Of a DNA stretch of 64,000 nt, positions 57,471-63,606 are shown in pieces; the stretch's first letter is position 1, and the number at the start of each line of letters is the position of its first letter. The DNA comes from Guillardia theta CCMP2712 (lineage: Eukaryota; Protista; Cryptophyta): positions 537,794 through 601,793 of the forward strand of contig NW_005434662.1 of NCBI RefSeq assembly GCF_000315625.1. Reading direction: 5' to 3'. Position numbers and translations under genes: made by a program. The notes beneath the pieces are model-generated. The model saw only the letters and a program-made list of their open reading frames with translations, made no database searches and had not been told where the DNA came from.

Positions 57471-57952
57471 GCTCTCCGACATCGTACCGGTAGCCGCCGG
57501 CATTTCTGGAAGTTCCCTCACCCTGTTACCCGGTACCTGTTCTCTGCTAGTAGAAGAAGGGGGTAGGGGTAGGAACTCGGGGTGCATGGCATGGAGTAGC
57601 AGCAGATGAAGAGATGCTAGTTCAAGATGCCTCGAACTGCTATGAAGACCTCCACCTCGTCATACGTGATCGCTGAAGACATGGCGATTCGAAGCGGAAT
57701 GGCCTTTGATTGGCGCTCATGACCGTTCAGGAGTTTATCTCAGGACGAGCCTGGATTACAAACGGCAGAATGCCCGTATCGTGATGGATTTCAGATGTTT
57801 ACTTCCATAGTCGACTCCATGTATTGATAAAATTTTGCACACCACTGTGCTAGATCAAACTTTGATCCCTGTTTCGGTGCCTGACGATAGGTCCTGCAAG
57901 TTAAAAATCTTCCTCAATTGCGTCTTTCTTGCTCGATTGAGTTCTAACTTCG

Positions 57953-59529
57953 TCAGCTCGACGTTTGGATGACTGGAGGGCCCAAACGCCGCTTCATCTC
58001 CGACATGAATCGACCCTTGAACTGGATCTGTGTCAATCCTAGCCCGTCTGGCGATGGAGCAACGAAAAGATCGTGCAAGCTAGCGTCGCGGTAGAGATCA
58101 AGCAAAGTTTTCCCATCAATTCCACCGCTCTCCACACCCTCCGCTGCCTTGGGAAGCTGCATGCTCTTGAACAAGTTCTTGACGTCAGACAAACTCATCT
58201 CAGAGATCTCCTTCTGTTGCTCAATTCGCTTTTTACAATGCCCGCATCCCATCTGAAAAGGAACTTTGGTCACTTTTAACCTTTTTGAGGCTCACAAAAC
58301 AAGACACCCATGCAATCTTACCTTGTCGAAATGTATCCACCCGTTTTCCTTTGCGCACTGCAAGCAATCATGCTCAGTTTGCAATATTTCATATTGTAAG
58401 TTGCGATTCTTTCAATACTCACGTTCTGTTATTGAGCAGTGACAACCAGGTACCAGAACGTCAACAATCAGTGCTTTGGGGCTCAATGCAATAAAGGCTT
58501 ACGCAGCACTTGCGAAGAAGAATCGCAATTCCAGGAGTTCGATTCCATCATTTCAGGGAAGCAACCAAGTTAGTAACAAGACATCATCACGTGCTTGCGG
58601 CAATGTAACTCACATACTGTCAACCCGATAGCAGATCCCAGCCCGTATCAGAAAGAACAAAGTCAGCGAGATAATATATACTAAGAGAAAGGAACTCACA
58701 TCCTACGAGAAGGATCAAGTCACAGATTCCAACCCATGCGAAAGGAAAGAGCAGACAAGAGTCAGCAACTATGTCAAGTCGGTGAGAAGATAGAAAGTAC
58801 TCACATCCTATGCAAAAAGGTTACCCCGGAAAATTAGCAAAGATTAACGAATGAGTCAGTCGCTCGAAATCTTTGGTTTAACTTCTCAAGATACTTACAA
58901 GCTTTCATGGAGCCAACAGTCGAGTTGAACAGAAACAAAAACAGGAAGGAGACAATGGTCAGTCGTCCGAAATCTCACACGCAGAATTTCATGTACTTAC
59001 AAACTGTCGACAGCAATTGACAAAACATAAATCCGCGATGATTCAACAAAGGACTTCAAAGTCAGCCAGTTGAAATTTGAATCAAGTGAATAAACTCACA
59101 ATCTGCCGACGATGGGCATTAAAAATAAGAAACATGCATAGGTCAGTGATTCGATAGTGAAAAGAACATGTAAATTACTCACATCCTATAAGAGACAGCA
59201 AGCAGCAAATCCGATGAATCGACAAGGAGGAAGATCAAGTTCAAGTTAGGCATGAGGCAGAATCAACAACAAAAGAAGTGACTCACGTCCTGTTGGCCCC
59301 AGATCCCACGAAAGAGTAGCAACAAAGAAAAATGTCAGAATGTCAAAATCAAGAATGATCGAGTGGGGCAAAAACAATAAAAGATTTTGCTCTCACCGTC
59401 TGAGGTGACAGACGCCCAACGAGCAAGTACGGAGAGTCAAAGGTCAGCAACCTGTTGGATGCAGATGCATTCAATTCATCTTACGCATGTGGTGCTGTCT
59501 TCGCTCGTTGTCTTGATCTTGATCTGCAT
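57953..59529 (-). CDS. 14-exon micro-exon gene encoding a 138-aa Cys-knuckle + SAM-like domain protein
   Basis: Exons: 59529-59485, 59399-59397, 59289-59287, 59185-59183, 59102-59100, 59003-59001, 58901-58899, 58807-58805, 58702-58700, 58616-58614, 58508-58503, 58425-58423, 58357-58322, 58252-57953. All introns are GTRAG...AG and phase 0. Product: MQIKIKTTSEDSTTC-T-D-D-I-F-L-D-D-Y-CC-N-CAKENGWIHFDK-MGCGHCKKR...SLSDVKNLFKSMQL...GIDGKTLLDL...LGL. Confidence 0.85.
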
Positions 59530-59839
59530 CGTATCGAGGCATCAGGGGCCGCCTCTTGCTACAGCATTCCCTCCCTCTCACCCGGCAAAGTTTGCATAGT
59601 GACATTTCGGCGGAGTGGCGCAGGGGTCTCAACCCTTTTAGATTTTATAGATATAAGGCGTTATAAAACTCATATCCATATATACCATACACCGGTACTG
59701 AGAACCTTCCTTTGGTGGGTAGGGTGCTTCACCACTATCCAACTACCCCACGAATATAGAGCAAGTACCCCAACCCTCCCTAGGGATCTTTGTCAGCCTG
59801 CCGGAGTGTCACCCCGAATAGAGGAAAAGCAGCTAAAAT

Positions 59840-60286: not shown

Positions 60287-63200
60287 TCATTGGCAGGAGC
60301 GATGCCTTCCGCGTCTTGCCTGTCGAGCTTCGATCAGCGGACACCTCACAGCAAGCCAGTCGAGGGTACGTGGTATCGAGGGTGAGAGCCGTCCGGGTCT
60401 GGATGTGAATGGAGTTGAGGAGCTCTGAGGAGAGGTGACGTCATCATCGGACGTGGGCCGCAGCCTTGTCACTTGCCTGTTTCCAACTCCTTGAGGGCGT
60501 CGGAGATTGACTGGGGGTTGGGGTCATGGGGCCGCCGAGGAAGGAGCGCAATGGGACTTCACCTTGTAGCTGGTGCACCTCCCGGCGTTCCAGTCCTCCA
60601 GCAGGGCGTCGGACTTGACGGCAATCAGGTCCTCTATCCTCGTCCGGAGAGATTCCTTGGTAGGGTCAGGCATGCCGGTGGGCCGGCGGTGTCAGGACTT
60701 ACCTGCAGTGAGCGGCCGCTCTCCGACAGATACTGCGGAAATCCATCATTCAGGTTGCACTGCCGGGCTCTACTTCACTCGCCTGTTTGAACTTGTTCTG
60801 GAACATGGACATGCTCTCGGCTCCCTCGCTCGTCGAGTTGATCGAGACCTTGGAGTAGCTCTTCACGCACAAGGCGGCCGGGGGAGGGGGAGGAGCGCTG
60901 GTGGGACAGAGCAGCAGGGCGGCTGGAGGGGAAGGACTTGCGGCTACCTGCACGATGCGGAGGGCCCGTTCGAGAACTTTCTTGTCATGCATCCCCAGCT
61001 TGATGGGCCGCGTGAGTCCGAGGAGGGTGCAGGAGGGCAAGTTGACTTGTCACCTGTGTGATGACGGTCGAGTCCAGCTGCGTGACGCCGTCGGGTTGAG
61101 CCCTGCAGGATGACTCCTGCTGATCGAGTCGGCGGAGGCGGGAGGGGCGAGAGGAGGGAGGACGCGGTCACCTCAGCGATCTTGTGTAGAATGATCCTTT
61201 GCTGCCATTTGTCTTGGATGCCAATCTCTGCATGCAGATAGTGAGCAAGCGACAGACAGCCATGAAGGTCATCGGCAGGACCGGATTCCAACGACAGGTT
61301 GGTGAGCCCAAGCAGCCGCATCCCATCGACGTCTTTCAGGTAGAAGTTTCTTCTCGGATGAAGATCAGGCCAGGGAGGAAGAAGGAGGGAAGGAGGGAGG
61401 GAGGGAGGGAAGGAAGGAAAGGCAGATGGATGGGTGGATGAAGGGAGGAGGGTGGGGTGGGTGGGAGGGGAGGGAGGGAGGGAGGGTGAGAGATCTAGCA
61501 TGGTGAGGCGGGTAGCAGGGCGACAGCAGCAAACCTGGAGTGTTCAGGGAAACCAATCTTCTCGATGAAAGCAGCAACCTTGAATCAGGAGTCAAAAGCT
61601 CTTCACCCCCTACTCTTCCAGCCTTTTCACCTCCTCCCGATCCCAATCAAGGATGTCCGTAACCTGCACAGGGTGTGAGGGCTCGGGAGGGTTGTCAGGG
61701 GTGAGGGGAGGAAGCAAACGAGCTACCAGGGGGAACCACGGGCTCTTAGGGGCCTCCTCCACATCGTTCTTCTTCCCGCGAGCCACCAGCCTTATCCTCA
61801 TCCTCCCGACTCTGCTGGGGGTGAAGACGCACGTGTACATCCCGTTCCCGTGGTCAATCACCTCAGACTCGATCGGCTCCCCGAACCCGACGACATCGCC
61901 TGCAAGCTCCATGGGCACCTCCTGCCTCCCCCCGCCCGCCCCGTCTGCCTCTTCCTCCTCTTGACTCGCTCCCTTGCACTCCTGCACGAGCAGGTTCCAC
62001 TTCACTCCCCCCGTAGACACCCTGTTGCCGTAGCGATCCCGCGTGACAATCGTGAAGGCCATTGGCAAGTTCTTTCCACCCTTGATCAGCCCGCGGCCGC
62101 TCGTCGTACAGTGGGGAATCGAGACGGGCCCATGGCGCACGAAGAGGTGGAAAGGGCTGTTGTACACGTGCCTGTTCCCCTCCAGCATCACCTTGAGCTG
62201 GTACACGCCTGCCCTCGTTGGGGCCTCGTAGGAGACGAGGTACTCTCCCTGCTGCGAGTCTACAACGTCCAGAGCCTTGGGAGGCTGGTCAGGAGGAGCA
62301 AGGCGTACGTAGAGCGCTCCCCCCGGGCAGGGGTTCTGAAAGCGATCCCTACCGTGGATGGTGAAAATAGCCTTCTCCCCTACGATAACCCGAGCGGCTC
62401 CCTCTCCCGTCACCCTCGTCGTGTATGCGTCCAGGGTAGCGGCGAGGATCGAGATGCTGTAGGGGCTGCCAGCGATGGGCACCCGTCGGCCTGGCCCAAA
62501 GTCCGTCTCGCTCTTGGAGTCCTCGAGGAAGATGTGGATCTTGTAGTTGCCGATCCTCGAGCCGTCGAAGTAGCAGATGTGGTTGTTGGTAGCAGGACTC
62601 GGCATCACTTTGGCCGGTACCCTGATGCCGAAGTCGACGTCCTCGATGTCTACAGTGAAGTCCAGGAAGCCGTCGTTGTCGTTGAGCATGATGCCATAGC
62701 GGTCGCGAGGCTGCACGAAGAACATGCACGAGTCATCAGCCCTCGGCTGCCTCTGCACCCCCGGGCCCTCGGCGGTACAACTGGGAGCATGGCATAGGCC
62801 CTTGGTGAAGGGCGACTGGAATACTCTCCTCATCTCGTCGTTGCGACACATCTCGATGGGGAGGCGGCGCTGTGCGTCAGGGATGTTCAGGTCAGCCCGC
62901 TCTGCGATGAGCAGGCGGGCAGTGTGGACGTGCCCTCGCTCGGTCGCCATGTGCAGTGCGGTCATCTTCTGCTGTCCTCCTCGCTCGTCGATGTACGCCC
63001 TCGACACGATGAGCGCCTTGCAGCACCACGAGTGTCCGTTGGTCGCCGCAAGGTGCAGAGGCGTCATGATCTCGTTGGACACTCGGCCGACGTCAGCCCT
63101 GGCATCCAGCATCACCTCAACGCTCTGAAGCTGACCTCTCTCCGCGCTATGGTGCAAGGGAAGCTTGCCGGAGCCGTCCGGGTGGTTCATGTCGGCGCCA

Positions 63201-63606
63201 TGCAGGGAAAGGTGGACGACTATGTTGACGTTCCCCCGGTAAGCTGCTTTCTTGAGAGGCGTGTCATTGTACTTGTCCACTGCATTCACATCCGCCTTGT
63301 GCTCAAGCAGGACAGTGCAGATCTCCAGGAAGCCCCCAGCTGCAGCTCGGTGGAGAGGAGTGGTACCGATGTTGTCCCTCTCATGAACGAGCTCCGGATC
63401 GTTATTGAGCAGCTCACTAACGGCTCGGAGATCGCCCTTGCGGCACGCGTCCTGCATCCTGTTGCCTGCTACTTCCACAAGCTCCTCATGGTAGCTTGAT
63501 CCTAAGTAGGTTCCTCGCCCACATTCTACCTACCATCATCAGAAACCCTGCCTTCACCTTGATCGACTCCTCCTCCTCCTCCTCCTCCTCCCCGCGCTCT
63601 CGTCAT
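60287..63606 (-). CDS. Ankyrin repeats + three filamin-type Ig repeats + SAM domain protein; ends approximate
   Basis: Ankyrins (GTTPLHRAAAGG, MTPLHLAATNGH). Filamin repeats (PIAGSPY, FTIHGRDRFQN, HVYNSPF, FTIVTRDRYGNR, DHGNGMYTCVFTP). SAM-like segment ILDWDREEV...DVDGMRLLGL...IGIQDKWQQRIILHKI. Confidence 0.85.

Follow-up and report, generated by a model that had tools for sequence, protein, structure and literature searches.

Evidence for eleven head-to-tail exons of one or two codons in a gene of Guillardia theta and for a genome-wide class of such arrays

The micro-exon genes (MEGs) of Schistosoma, reportedly described by DeMarco et al. in Genome Res in 2010, are said to contain exons of 6–36 nucleotides (nt), to encode secreted products and to vary by exon skipping. 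Introners have reportedly been treated by Worden in 2009, Huff in 2016 and Gozashti in 2022, while Zhuo et al., in PNAS in 2007, reportedly traced alternatively spliced human introns of modern origin to tandem arrays. In recursive splicing, ratchet points consist of a juxtaposed AG/GT, i.e., a zero-length exon, and leave nothing in the mRNA. Isolated 3-nt or ultra-short microexons of animals and plants are spliceable and mis-annotated by aligners (PMC8831610; PMC8042270; PMC12871342), and introners or introner-like elements are present as many near-identical short introns per genome (PMC4457414). Here, we describe a locus on the minus strand of a 64,000-nt stretch of the Guillardia theta CCMP2712 genome (contig NW_005434662.1, positions 537,794 to 601,793, hereafter termed the window), in which eleven exons of 3 or 6 nt follow each other head to tail. 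We consider it highly probable that this locus is an expressed 15-exon minus-strand gene, that residues 22–33 of its product are encoded by eleven constitutively spliced phase-0 micro-exons and that these may be accommodated by displaced branch points. Full-text literature searches revealed no description of head-to-tail arrays of single-codon exons; what they did turn up concerns single exons of 3 nt, microexons of plants and animals, introners, and introns that stem from tandem duplication (PMC8831610; PMC8042270; PMC12871342; PMC4457414).

A motif scan located eleven sites of the form (C/T/A)AG-N3-GT(A/G)AG or (C/T/A)AG-N6-GT(A/G)AG between 58423 and 59399 of the minus strand, at exactly the positions proposed by a first-pass annotation made from the letters alone. 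They delimit ten 3-nt exons and one 6-nt exon, separated by introns of 77–107 nt (107, 101, 80, 96, 99, 91, 102, 83, 105 and 77 nt in minus-strand order), with an 85-nt intron preceding the first micro-exon and a 65-nt intron trailing the last. In the remainder of the window, both strands together contain no more than 14 matches to the motif in its 3-nt form, and by our own arithmetic from the window counts the chance probability of ten successive matches at 77–107-nt spacing is roughly 1e-24.

Four runs, each from a different study, were placed on positions 57700–59800 (contigs for X1, X2 and X6, raw reads for X17). In an X1 contig, 58357 is joined to 59485 through 36 letters, the reverse complement of which consists of the eleven micro-exons in order (ACG, GAC, GAT, ATT, TTT, CTT, GAT, GAT, TAT, TGCTGC and AAC). 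X2, from a different study, contains 32 of these 36 letters and continues into the remaining four, and X6, from a third study, passes from 58357 to 58503 via GTT (the AAC exon) and reads ATC, ATC, AAG, AAA, AAT and ATC after 58616. The 36-mer is absent from the 87-Mb assembly even when up to two mismatches are allowed and therefore has its source in RNA, a retrocopy being excluded. X1, X2 and X6 all contain the joints 58252/58322 and 58357/58503, so that the 36-nt exon and the 300-nt last exon suggested by the first-pass annotation are borne out by three runs. X1 covers exons 1 to 14 in spliced form as a single unbranched contig, and the joint 59523/59582 of this run skips 58 nt bounded by CT..AC on the plus strand. 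The gene thus comprises the following features:

59582..59616, minus strand: exon 1, 5' untranslated region (UTR; at least to 59616) and first 8 codons; X1 contig, joint of 59582 to 59523
59605-59603, minus strand: likely start ATG (MSLCKLCR), frame continuous with the coding sequence, in-frame stop 13 codons upstream
59524..59581, minus strand: intron 1, 58 nt, GTGAGA...CAG, phase 0; joint 59523/59582 in X1
59485..59523, minus strand: exon 2, 39 nt, IKIKTTSEDSTTC; RNA contig pieces and joints, translation
59397..59399, minus strand: micro-exon ACG (T); motif, RNA contigs, translation
59287..59289, minus strand: micro-exon GAC (D); motif, RNA contigs, translation
59183..59185, minus strand: micro-exon GAT (D); motif, RNA contigs, translation
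59100..59102, minus strand: micro-exon ATT (I); motif, RNA contigs, translation
59001..59003, minus strand: micro-exon TTT (F); motif, RNA contigs, translation
58899..58901, minus strand: micro-exon CTT (L); motif, RNA contigs, translation
58805..58807, minus strand: micro-exon GAT (D); motif, RNA contigs, translation
58700..58702, minus strand: micro-exon GAT (D); motif, RNA contigs, translation
58614..58616, minus strand: micro-exon TAT (Y); motif, RNA contigs, translation
58503..58508, minus strand: micro-exon TGCTGC (CC); motif, RNA contigs, positional counterpart TGYTGY in 18 other loci
58423..58425, minus strand: micro-exon AAC (N); GTT between 58357 and 58503 in X1, X2 and X6, counterpart AAY in 18 other loci
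58426..59484, minus strand: eleven array introns (85-, 107-, ... 77-nt) interspersed with the micro-exons, each GTRAG...YAG, phase 0
58358..58422, minus strand: intron 13, 65 nt, ordinary, branch-point-like motif 16 nt from the 3' splice site; RNA joint
58322..58357, minus strand: exon 14, 36 nt, CAKENGWIHFDK, the conserved C-x-K-x-x-G-W-x-x-Y/F-x-x exon of the family; joints in three runs
58253..58321, minus strand: intron 14, 69 nt, ordinary; joint 58252/58322 in X1, X2 and X6
57953..58252, minus strand: last coding exon, 300 nt, 99 codons plus stop (57955-57953), beginning with a G-C-G-H-C-K knuckle followed by the SAM-fold domain
57782..57952, minus strand: 3' UTR, approximate; the X2 contig starts at 57782, X1 and X6 contigs extend past 57700, X17 reads at 57771-58125

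The spliced coding sequence of 15 exons amounts to 435 nt or 144 amino acids (aa), with all 14 introns in phase 0. Ten single-codon and one double-codon micro-exon encode residues 22–33 (TDDIFLDDYCCN, twelve aa); their joined frame is open, the same string is present in the RNA contigs, and the frame completes the CCNC...CGHC motif as foreseen by the first-pass annotation. What did not hold is its 45-nt ATG exon: the actual exon comprises 39 nt (59485-59523), and the ATG proposed at 59529-27 lies in the 3' end of the 58-nt intron that is spliced out. The stepwise removal of adjacent intron segments and the close juxtaposition of 3' and 5' splice sites are shared with ratchet points; here, however, three nucleotides per junction are kept in the RNA contigs.

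Contigs of partly spliced forms retain the 105-nt intron 58509-58613 and four introns between 58902 and 59286 while their neighbors have already been removed, i.e., there is no strict order of removal. Most of the array introns would bring in-frame stops if retained. The 105-nt intron, which separates TAT from TGCTGC, remains present in contigs of all three contig-based runs at a depth comparable to that of the spliced exons, would lead to an in-frame stop at codon 8 if translated and may represent a slow or regulated intron. One X1 contig, record 2 (58337-59616, 657 nt), follows a partly spliced form and then returns on the other strand by way of the fully spliced one; this turn-back (joint 59280/59616, flagged as 'opposite strands') is an assembly-graph artefact and not a real molecule, though the local joints of the record are still valid.

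With branch points assigned as the best CTGAC/CTAAC-type motif per intron, the array introns differ clearly from ordinary introns of the same genes. All eleven carry a CTGAC, CTAAC or TTGAC motif 35–61 nt upstream of the 3' splice site (35–61 nt with a median of 52 nt for the ten introns inside the array, 44 nt for the intron before the first micro-exon), and the median distance is 57 nt in 202 other array introns. In contrast, the median is 16 nt (interquartile range 13–18) in 17 control introns that precede exons of at least 36 nt in the same genes and include the 58-, 65- and 69-nt introns of the window (Mann-Whitney P = 1e-9). A branch point about 50 nt from the 3' splice site implies that the branch is also separated from the following 5' splice site by about 50 nt or more, as it is across an ordinary exon. 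We infer that each unit of about 100 nt may be recognized by intron definition through its near-consensus 5' site, consensus branch-point motif and YAG. The displaced branch point would then stand in for the exon as the spacer that separates the 3'-site and 5'-site complexes and would avoid the steric clash that normally fixes a minimum exon size; the introns of the array are removed in no fixed order. The testable rule that follows is that, by means of a distal branch point, the branch site and the 5' splice site that comes next are held about 50 nt apart. A lengthened region between branch point and 3' splice site is likewise described for vertebrate neural microexons (PMC12871342). Animal and plant microexons are otherwise different, being single cassette exons with long flanking introns and often SRRM4-type regulation, whereas here 6–20 or more form a head-to-tail series, separated by introns of about 100 nt, and their inclusion is constitutive in the data seen.

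Within the N-terminal 55 residues of the product, the spliced coding sequence specifies eight cysteines, arranged as CKLC, a lone C and then CCNC-x14-CGHC. The pattern CCNC-x14-CGHC with an upstream CKLC is also conserved in paralogues, and the micro-exons contribute the CC and the N of the first knuckle of CCNC-x14-CGHC. By its pattern the module would be zinc-ribbon-like, and zinc binding is predicted. The N-terminus, MSLCKLCRIKIKTT, does not appear hydrophobic by eye, and the residue-by-residue segment is placed in what looks like an intracellular cysteine module. The last exon yielded no Pfam match. Its AlphaFold2 model (mean predicted local distance difference test, pLDDT, 83.5) has six helices, and the top 10 Foldseek matches in the PDB are all SAM domains, with root-mean-square deviations of 2.3–3.4 A and template modelling scores by target of 0.66–0.77 at weak E-values of 0.13–0.8; judged by this model, the exon encodes a five-helix SAM (sterile alpha motif) fold. 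The only protein for the locus in a collection of 5.8 billion sequences is a 99-aa open reading frame (ORF) of the last exon (P0001), in line with the earlier expectation that gene finders would miss the array. Apart from the locus itself, a homology search with these 99 aa retrieved a single cryptophyte orthologue and nothing else. Within the genome, the last exon has its closest paralogue on contig C121, which is 54% identical, lacks an upstream array and has the SAM-like domain alone in common. The upstream neighbor at 61610-63478, likewise on the minus strand, is an ORF of 622 aa in which ankyrin repeats precede three filamin/ABP280 repeats (Pfam E 5e-44 and 2e-33).

The genome (87.1 Mb, 669 contigs) was scanned for runs of such sites, a search that had been suggested beforehand. 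Three micro-exon sites at 55–110-nt spacing occurred 303 times as compared to once with a reversed-pattern control, a few of the 303 matches being simple repeats. When the leading Y was dropped from the pattern, the search was flooded by (AGTG)n repeats. Four candidates (C12:382140-382443, C12:899016-899313, C54:28728-29338 and C17:621127-621348) were discarded as simple repeats such as (AGTG)n and 20-nt units like CAGACTGTGAGGGAGTATGA. Simple repeats thus also fit micro-exon array patterns, and genome-wide counts need filtering. Among 20 loci that were fetched and in which sites were chained, arrays of 3 to 20 micro-exons are common. Across 32 arrays of at least five units, none of the 248 single-codon exons is a stop codon (P about 7e-6), and internal exons are 3 nt (248), 6 nt (15) or 9 nt (5) and of no other length, while intron lengths are uniform modulo 3. 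In one 10-kb region (L048, G000:C105:48500-58499, plus strand), about nine separate arrays of 3 to 11 micro-exons each extend over 7 kb of a single strand; the residues they specify are mostly hydrophobic (e.g., IVLWIVLWG), and single-codon exons may make up the greater part of a gene here.

In nine further arrays the end is the same as in the window, i.e., TGYTGY and then AAY, followed by a 36-nt C-x-K-x-x-G-W-x-x-Y-x-x exon and a last exon starting x-G-C-x-x-C-K. The combination AG-TGYTGY-GTRAG...YAG-AAY-GTRAG is present at 19 loci including the window and at none in the control. In the family loci that were read, 6 to 20 single-codon exons lie upstream of this signature. The C-terminal parts differ among the paralogues and comprise the SAM domain in the window, a kinase (L047), a kinase-RING protein (L046), a large SPRY-containing protein (L057) and also a coiled coil; a homologue search with the last exon of L047 returned bacterial kinases only, from candidate saturation. 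The locus is not unique: at least 19 paralogous modules and dozens of arrays, itself included, are present in the Guillardia theta genome. The first-pass annotation knew of no earlier description of such an array, and no paper on such arrays was found. The window array appears to be an old and small representative of a class that extends across the genome and seems not to have been described.

These findings bear on the question whether the array is exonic at all. The region contains no long ORF, and in principle a diverged tandem repeat with the unit GTRAGT...YAG could produce the observed pattern, so that one long intron, or an untranscribed decayed repeat, with a merely coincidental open frame might be considered. 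Tandem Repeats Finder reported two trivial repeats only in 57800-59800 and did not score the array as a repeat. This reading is refuted by the spliced RNA contigs, which hold a 36-nt string that is missing from the genome; the absence of stops from the 248 single-codon exons and the conservation of CC-N at 19 loci likewise speak against it, and we regard its probability as negligible.

Phase and length of the micro-exons raise a further possibility, that of a combinatorial diversifier in which regulated skipping of subsets yields many in-frame isoforms differing by single residues. All micro-exons are symmetric (phase 0-0, 3n), so that any skip stays in frame, and the 3n rule, which holds for 268 of 268 internal micro-exons, would be expected if skipping were frequent enough for selection. 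The orthologue from Hanusia phi adds to this: P0002, a transcriptome-derived protein of 155 aa that is 90% identical over the last exon, stems from an mRNA that lacks the whole module and remains in frame. The 37-aa module is accordingly dispensable, lineage-specific or skippable as a block, and the joining of the first CxxC to the last CxxC in P0002 could reflect block skipping, loss, or later gain in the lineage of the window. The contigs of the three studies, on the other hand, never lack any micro-exon: neither among their joints nor among their inserted strings was exon skipping seen, nor were the deletion variants of the exon 14-exon 2 string, for which the first-pass annotation had proposed a search, retained introns being the only variation, although contigs lose rare variants and low-level skipping could escape them. 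In addition, the micro-exons encode two cysteines of a conserved knuckle and CC-N is fixed in 19 paralogues, such that skipping would break the motif. The 2^11 = 2048 isoforms that had been envisaged thus find no counterpart in the contigs, which show full inclusion or intron retention only, and we judge combinatorial diversification to be very improbable.

The same point separates the locus from the Schistosoma MEGs. Both are gene families in which a variable segment is formed by tandem symmetric 3n exons, both are missed by standard gene finders, and in both the exons vary more than their flanks. The eleven consecutive phase 0-0 exons match the MEG layout, though with 3 nt (rarely 6 or 9 nt across the arrays) their size is below 6–36 nt, and skipping is not seen in the contigs. 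MEG products are secreted whereas the module described here looks intracellular, the hosts are a flatworm and a cryptophyte alga, and no sequence homology was found in a search made with the 99-aa last exon only.

P0002 provides support for our interpretation of the locus as an expressed gene insofar as this protein of the sister genus has the same predicted start (MSLCQLCR vs. MSLCKLCR) and the same last exon. Several points weigh against our interpretation. P0002 itself reads MSLCQLCR-I-GCGHCKK, so that the 37 residues encoded from exon 2 through the array to exon 14 are missing. The runs X1, X2 and X6 are labelled 'RNA? (a guess)', their RNA nature being deduced from the spliced joints, and X17, the sole run recorded as RNA, is a 3'-biased 60-nt short-read library that covers the last exon only. 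Furthermore, branch points are motif assignments, the putative zinc finger is proposed from cysteine spacing, and the gene product is predicted from nucleotide data. A search with the last exon of L057 led to a second Hanusia protein, P0024 (53% identity), in which the last CxxCK knuckle is kept and the CCNC motif is absent; as a guide to arrays in Hanusia it was uninformative and was rejected.

Metagenomes were scanned with the pattern GTAAGT...TAG NNN GTAAGT...TAG NNN GTAAGT, which matched more than 120 contigs, about 17 of them with true-looking arrays. Most of the matches proved to be simple repeats of the TAAGTAAG type and were not accepted as arrays; a single group of JGI metagenome contig sets that kept recurring contributed many of them. 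An AT-rich group (GC 15–26%) comprises the following contigs:

L058, L065, L078, L082, L089, L115, L126, L141, L151, L153, L159, L165 and L175 (WNGF01/WNFZ01/WNGA01, Ga0137368/74)

Here, candidate arrays of 3-nt exons with a homologous intron family of about 95 nt lie directly upstream of TKL-like kinase ORFs, the nearest Atlas clusters of which belong to Mucoromycota. Only in the +2 register do these predicted exons read into the kinase frame; their introns are therefore not in phase 0. Further candidate arrays stem from other eukaryotes, namely L171 and L111 (Ga0105053/Ga0105055), L109 (Ga0114964) and L123 (JACKZZ01). L171 and L111 form a GC-rich group (GC 49–57%) with introns of about 92 nt and a CTCAC motif, while L123 contains five 53-nt introns that are about 94% identical between the unrelated triplets GAA, TTG, TCA, TAT and CGT. 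In L151, L065 and L123, introns are 93–97% identical and triplets unrelated. The lack of stop codons among 176 exons of metagenome arrays was not used as evidence, as the contigs had been picked by eye and the frame is offset in several. These sequences hint that the same layout exists in a Mucoromycota-like fungus and in a GC-rich eukaryote.

With regard to the origin of the arrays, two processes have to be weighed. In the first, whole units of an intron plus 3 nt would be gained and lost by unequal exchange, one residue each, such that arrays would be spliceable minisatellites; codons would diverge under selection and introns decay slowly, the window array being old and diverged. As in tandem-array introns, each repeat unit bears a 5' and a 3' splice site and the repeat is spliced out, but those are alternative introns in non-coding or variable contexts, whereas exactly 3 nt per unit are kept and translated here. 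Unit duplication is suggested by the younger arrays (L038, L041, L051, L055 and L039), in which units of about 105 nt are homologous with a column identity of 0.60–0.68, by the variation in unit number from 6 to 20 among paralogues, and by exon lengths that are always 3n, as frame-preserving gain or loss of units demands. The arrays are also mosaic, with breakpoints within introns: interspersed, non-collinear intron subtypes and breaks of similarity inside introns identify them as recombinant mosaics. The exons themselves do not fit, since the three exon positions are at random identity (0.21–0.33) as compared to 0.6–0.97 for introns, metagenome-array introns are 93–97% identical around unrelated triplets, and identical adjacent codons are not enriched. 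Near-identical junction pairs, defined by at most 6 of 45 mismatches in each flanking half-intron and not independent of each other, differ at 49% of codon positions vs. 9% of flank positions. On this evidence we rate unit duplication as a serious candidate with somewhat less than an even chance.

In the second process, an introner-like or reverse-splicing mechanism, or conversion limited to introns, would place or renew copies of one intron family at successive 3-nt steps in a pre-existing coding sequence, which would leave introns alike and triplets unrelated. This is what is seen in near-identical introns around unrelated triplets within and between loci, in the interspersed subtypes that are non-collinear between loci, and in the fungus-like contigs, where 3-nt exons join the kinase ORF only in the +2 register and the step is thus independent of codon boundaries. 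As with introners, intron sequence is more similar than the surrounding coding sequence. Introners, however, are scattered singly in unrelated genes, often with transposon hallmarks, whereas the copies described here are 3 nt apart in a few dozen loci, the introns of the window do not recognizably belong to a near-identical family, and the ~105-nt family of the other arrays was seen only inside arrays, with no solitary copies in what was sampled. Neither terminal inverted repeats nor target-site duplications were seen, though no dedicated scan for them was made, and adjacent identical triplets are not enriched; the unrelated triplets around near-identical introns argue against a 3-bp duplication. 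One pair is similar through the codon into both adjoining introns, the introns of the window lack similarity to the intron family, and we know of no mechanism that yields a strict 3-nt step. Copying of introns alone is, in our estimation, possible, with the chances leaning against it. We leave the origin open between unit duplication and intron-only copying.

Introns of the window array have little in common in a multiple alignment beyond GTRAGT, the CTGAC-type motif and YAG, and when compared with one another or with 234 other array introns they are, on average, about as similar as a shuffled background; they are too diverged to be placed, which suggests an old array. Rfam at E <= 1 gave no match for the conserved introns of seven loci, and RNAalifold predicted no pairs for 47 introns of the family, so that neither a structured RNA nor a snoRNA host is evident in them. 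That head-to-tail arrays of 3-nt exons constitute a distinct recurrent architecture, combining branch points displaced by about 50 nt with copying of introns without the triplet in strict 3-nt register, is a tentative proposal that we hold to be rather unlikely as a whole. A hint of such copying comes from the metagenome arrays of the Mucoromycota-like fungus and the GC-rich eukaryote, where unrelated triplets lie between introns of 93–97% identity. If true, it would imply an undescribed mechanism of intron proliferation, and recombination between introns would let evolution reshuffle a protein segment at single-residue resolution.

According to the splicing evidence, the spliceosome of this organism can constitutively join eleven back-to-back exons of 3–6 nt, much less than the minimum size that textbooks give for an exon. 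That the introns are alike while the triplets are unrelated has a bearing on how new introns arise. Coding sequence of this class escapes gene finders and spliced aligners alike; in the case of the window, the public gene model consists of the last exon alone. In the family, the arrays place linkers of variable length in a cysteine module that heads kinase, RING and SAM proteins, and the length and sequence of these linkers would be changeable one residue at a time.

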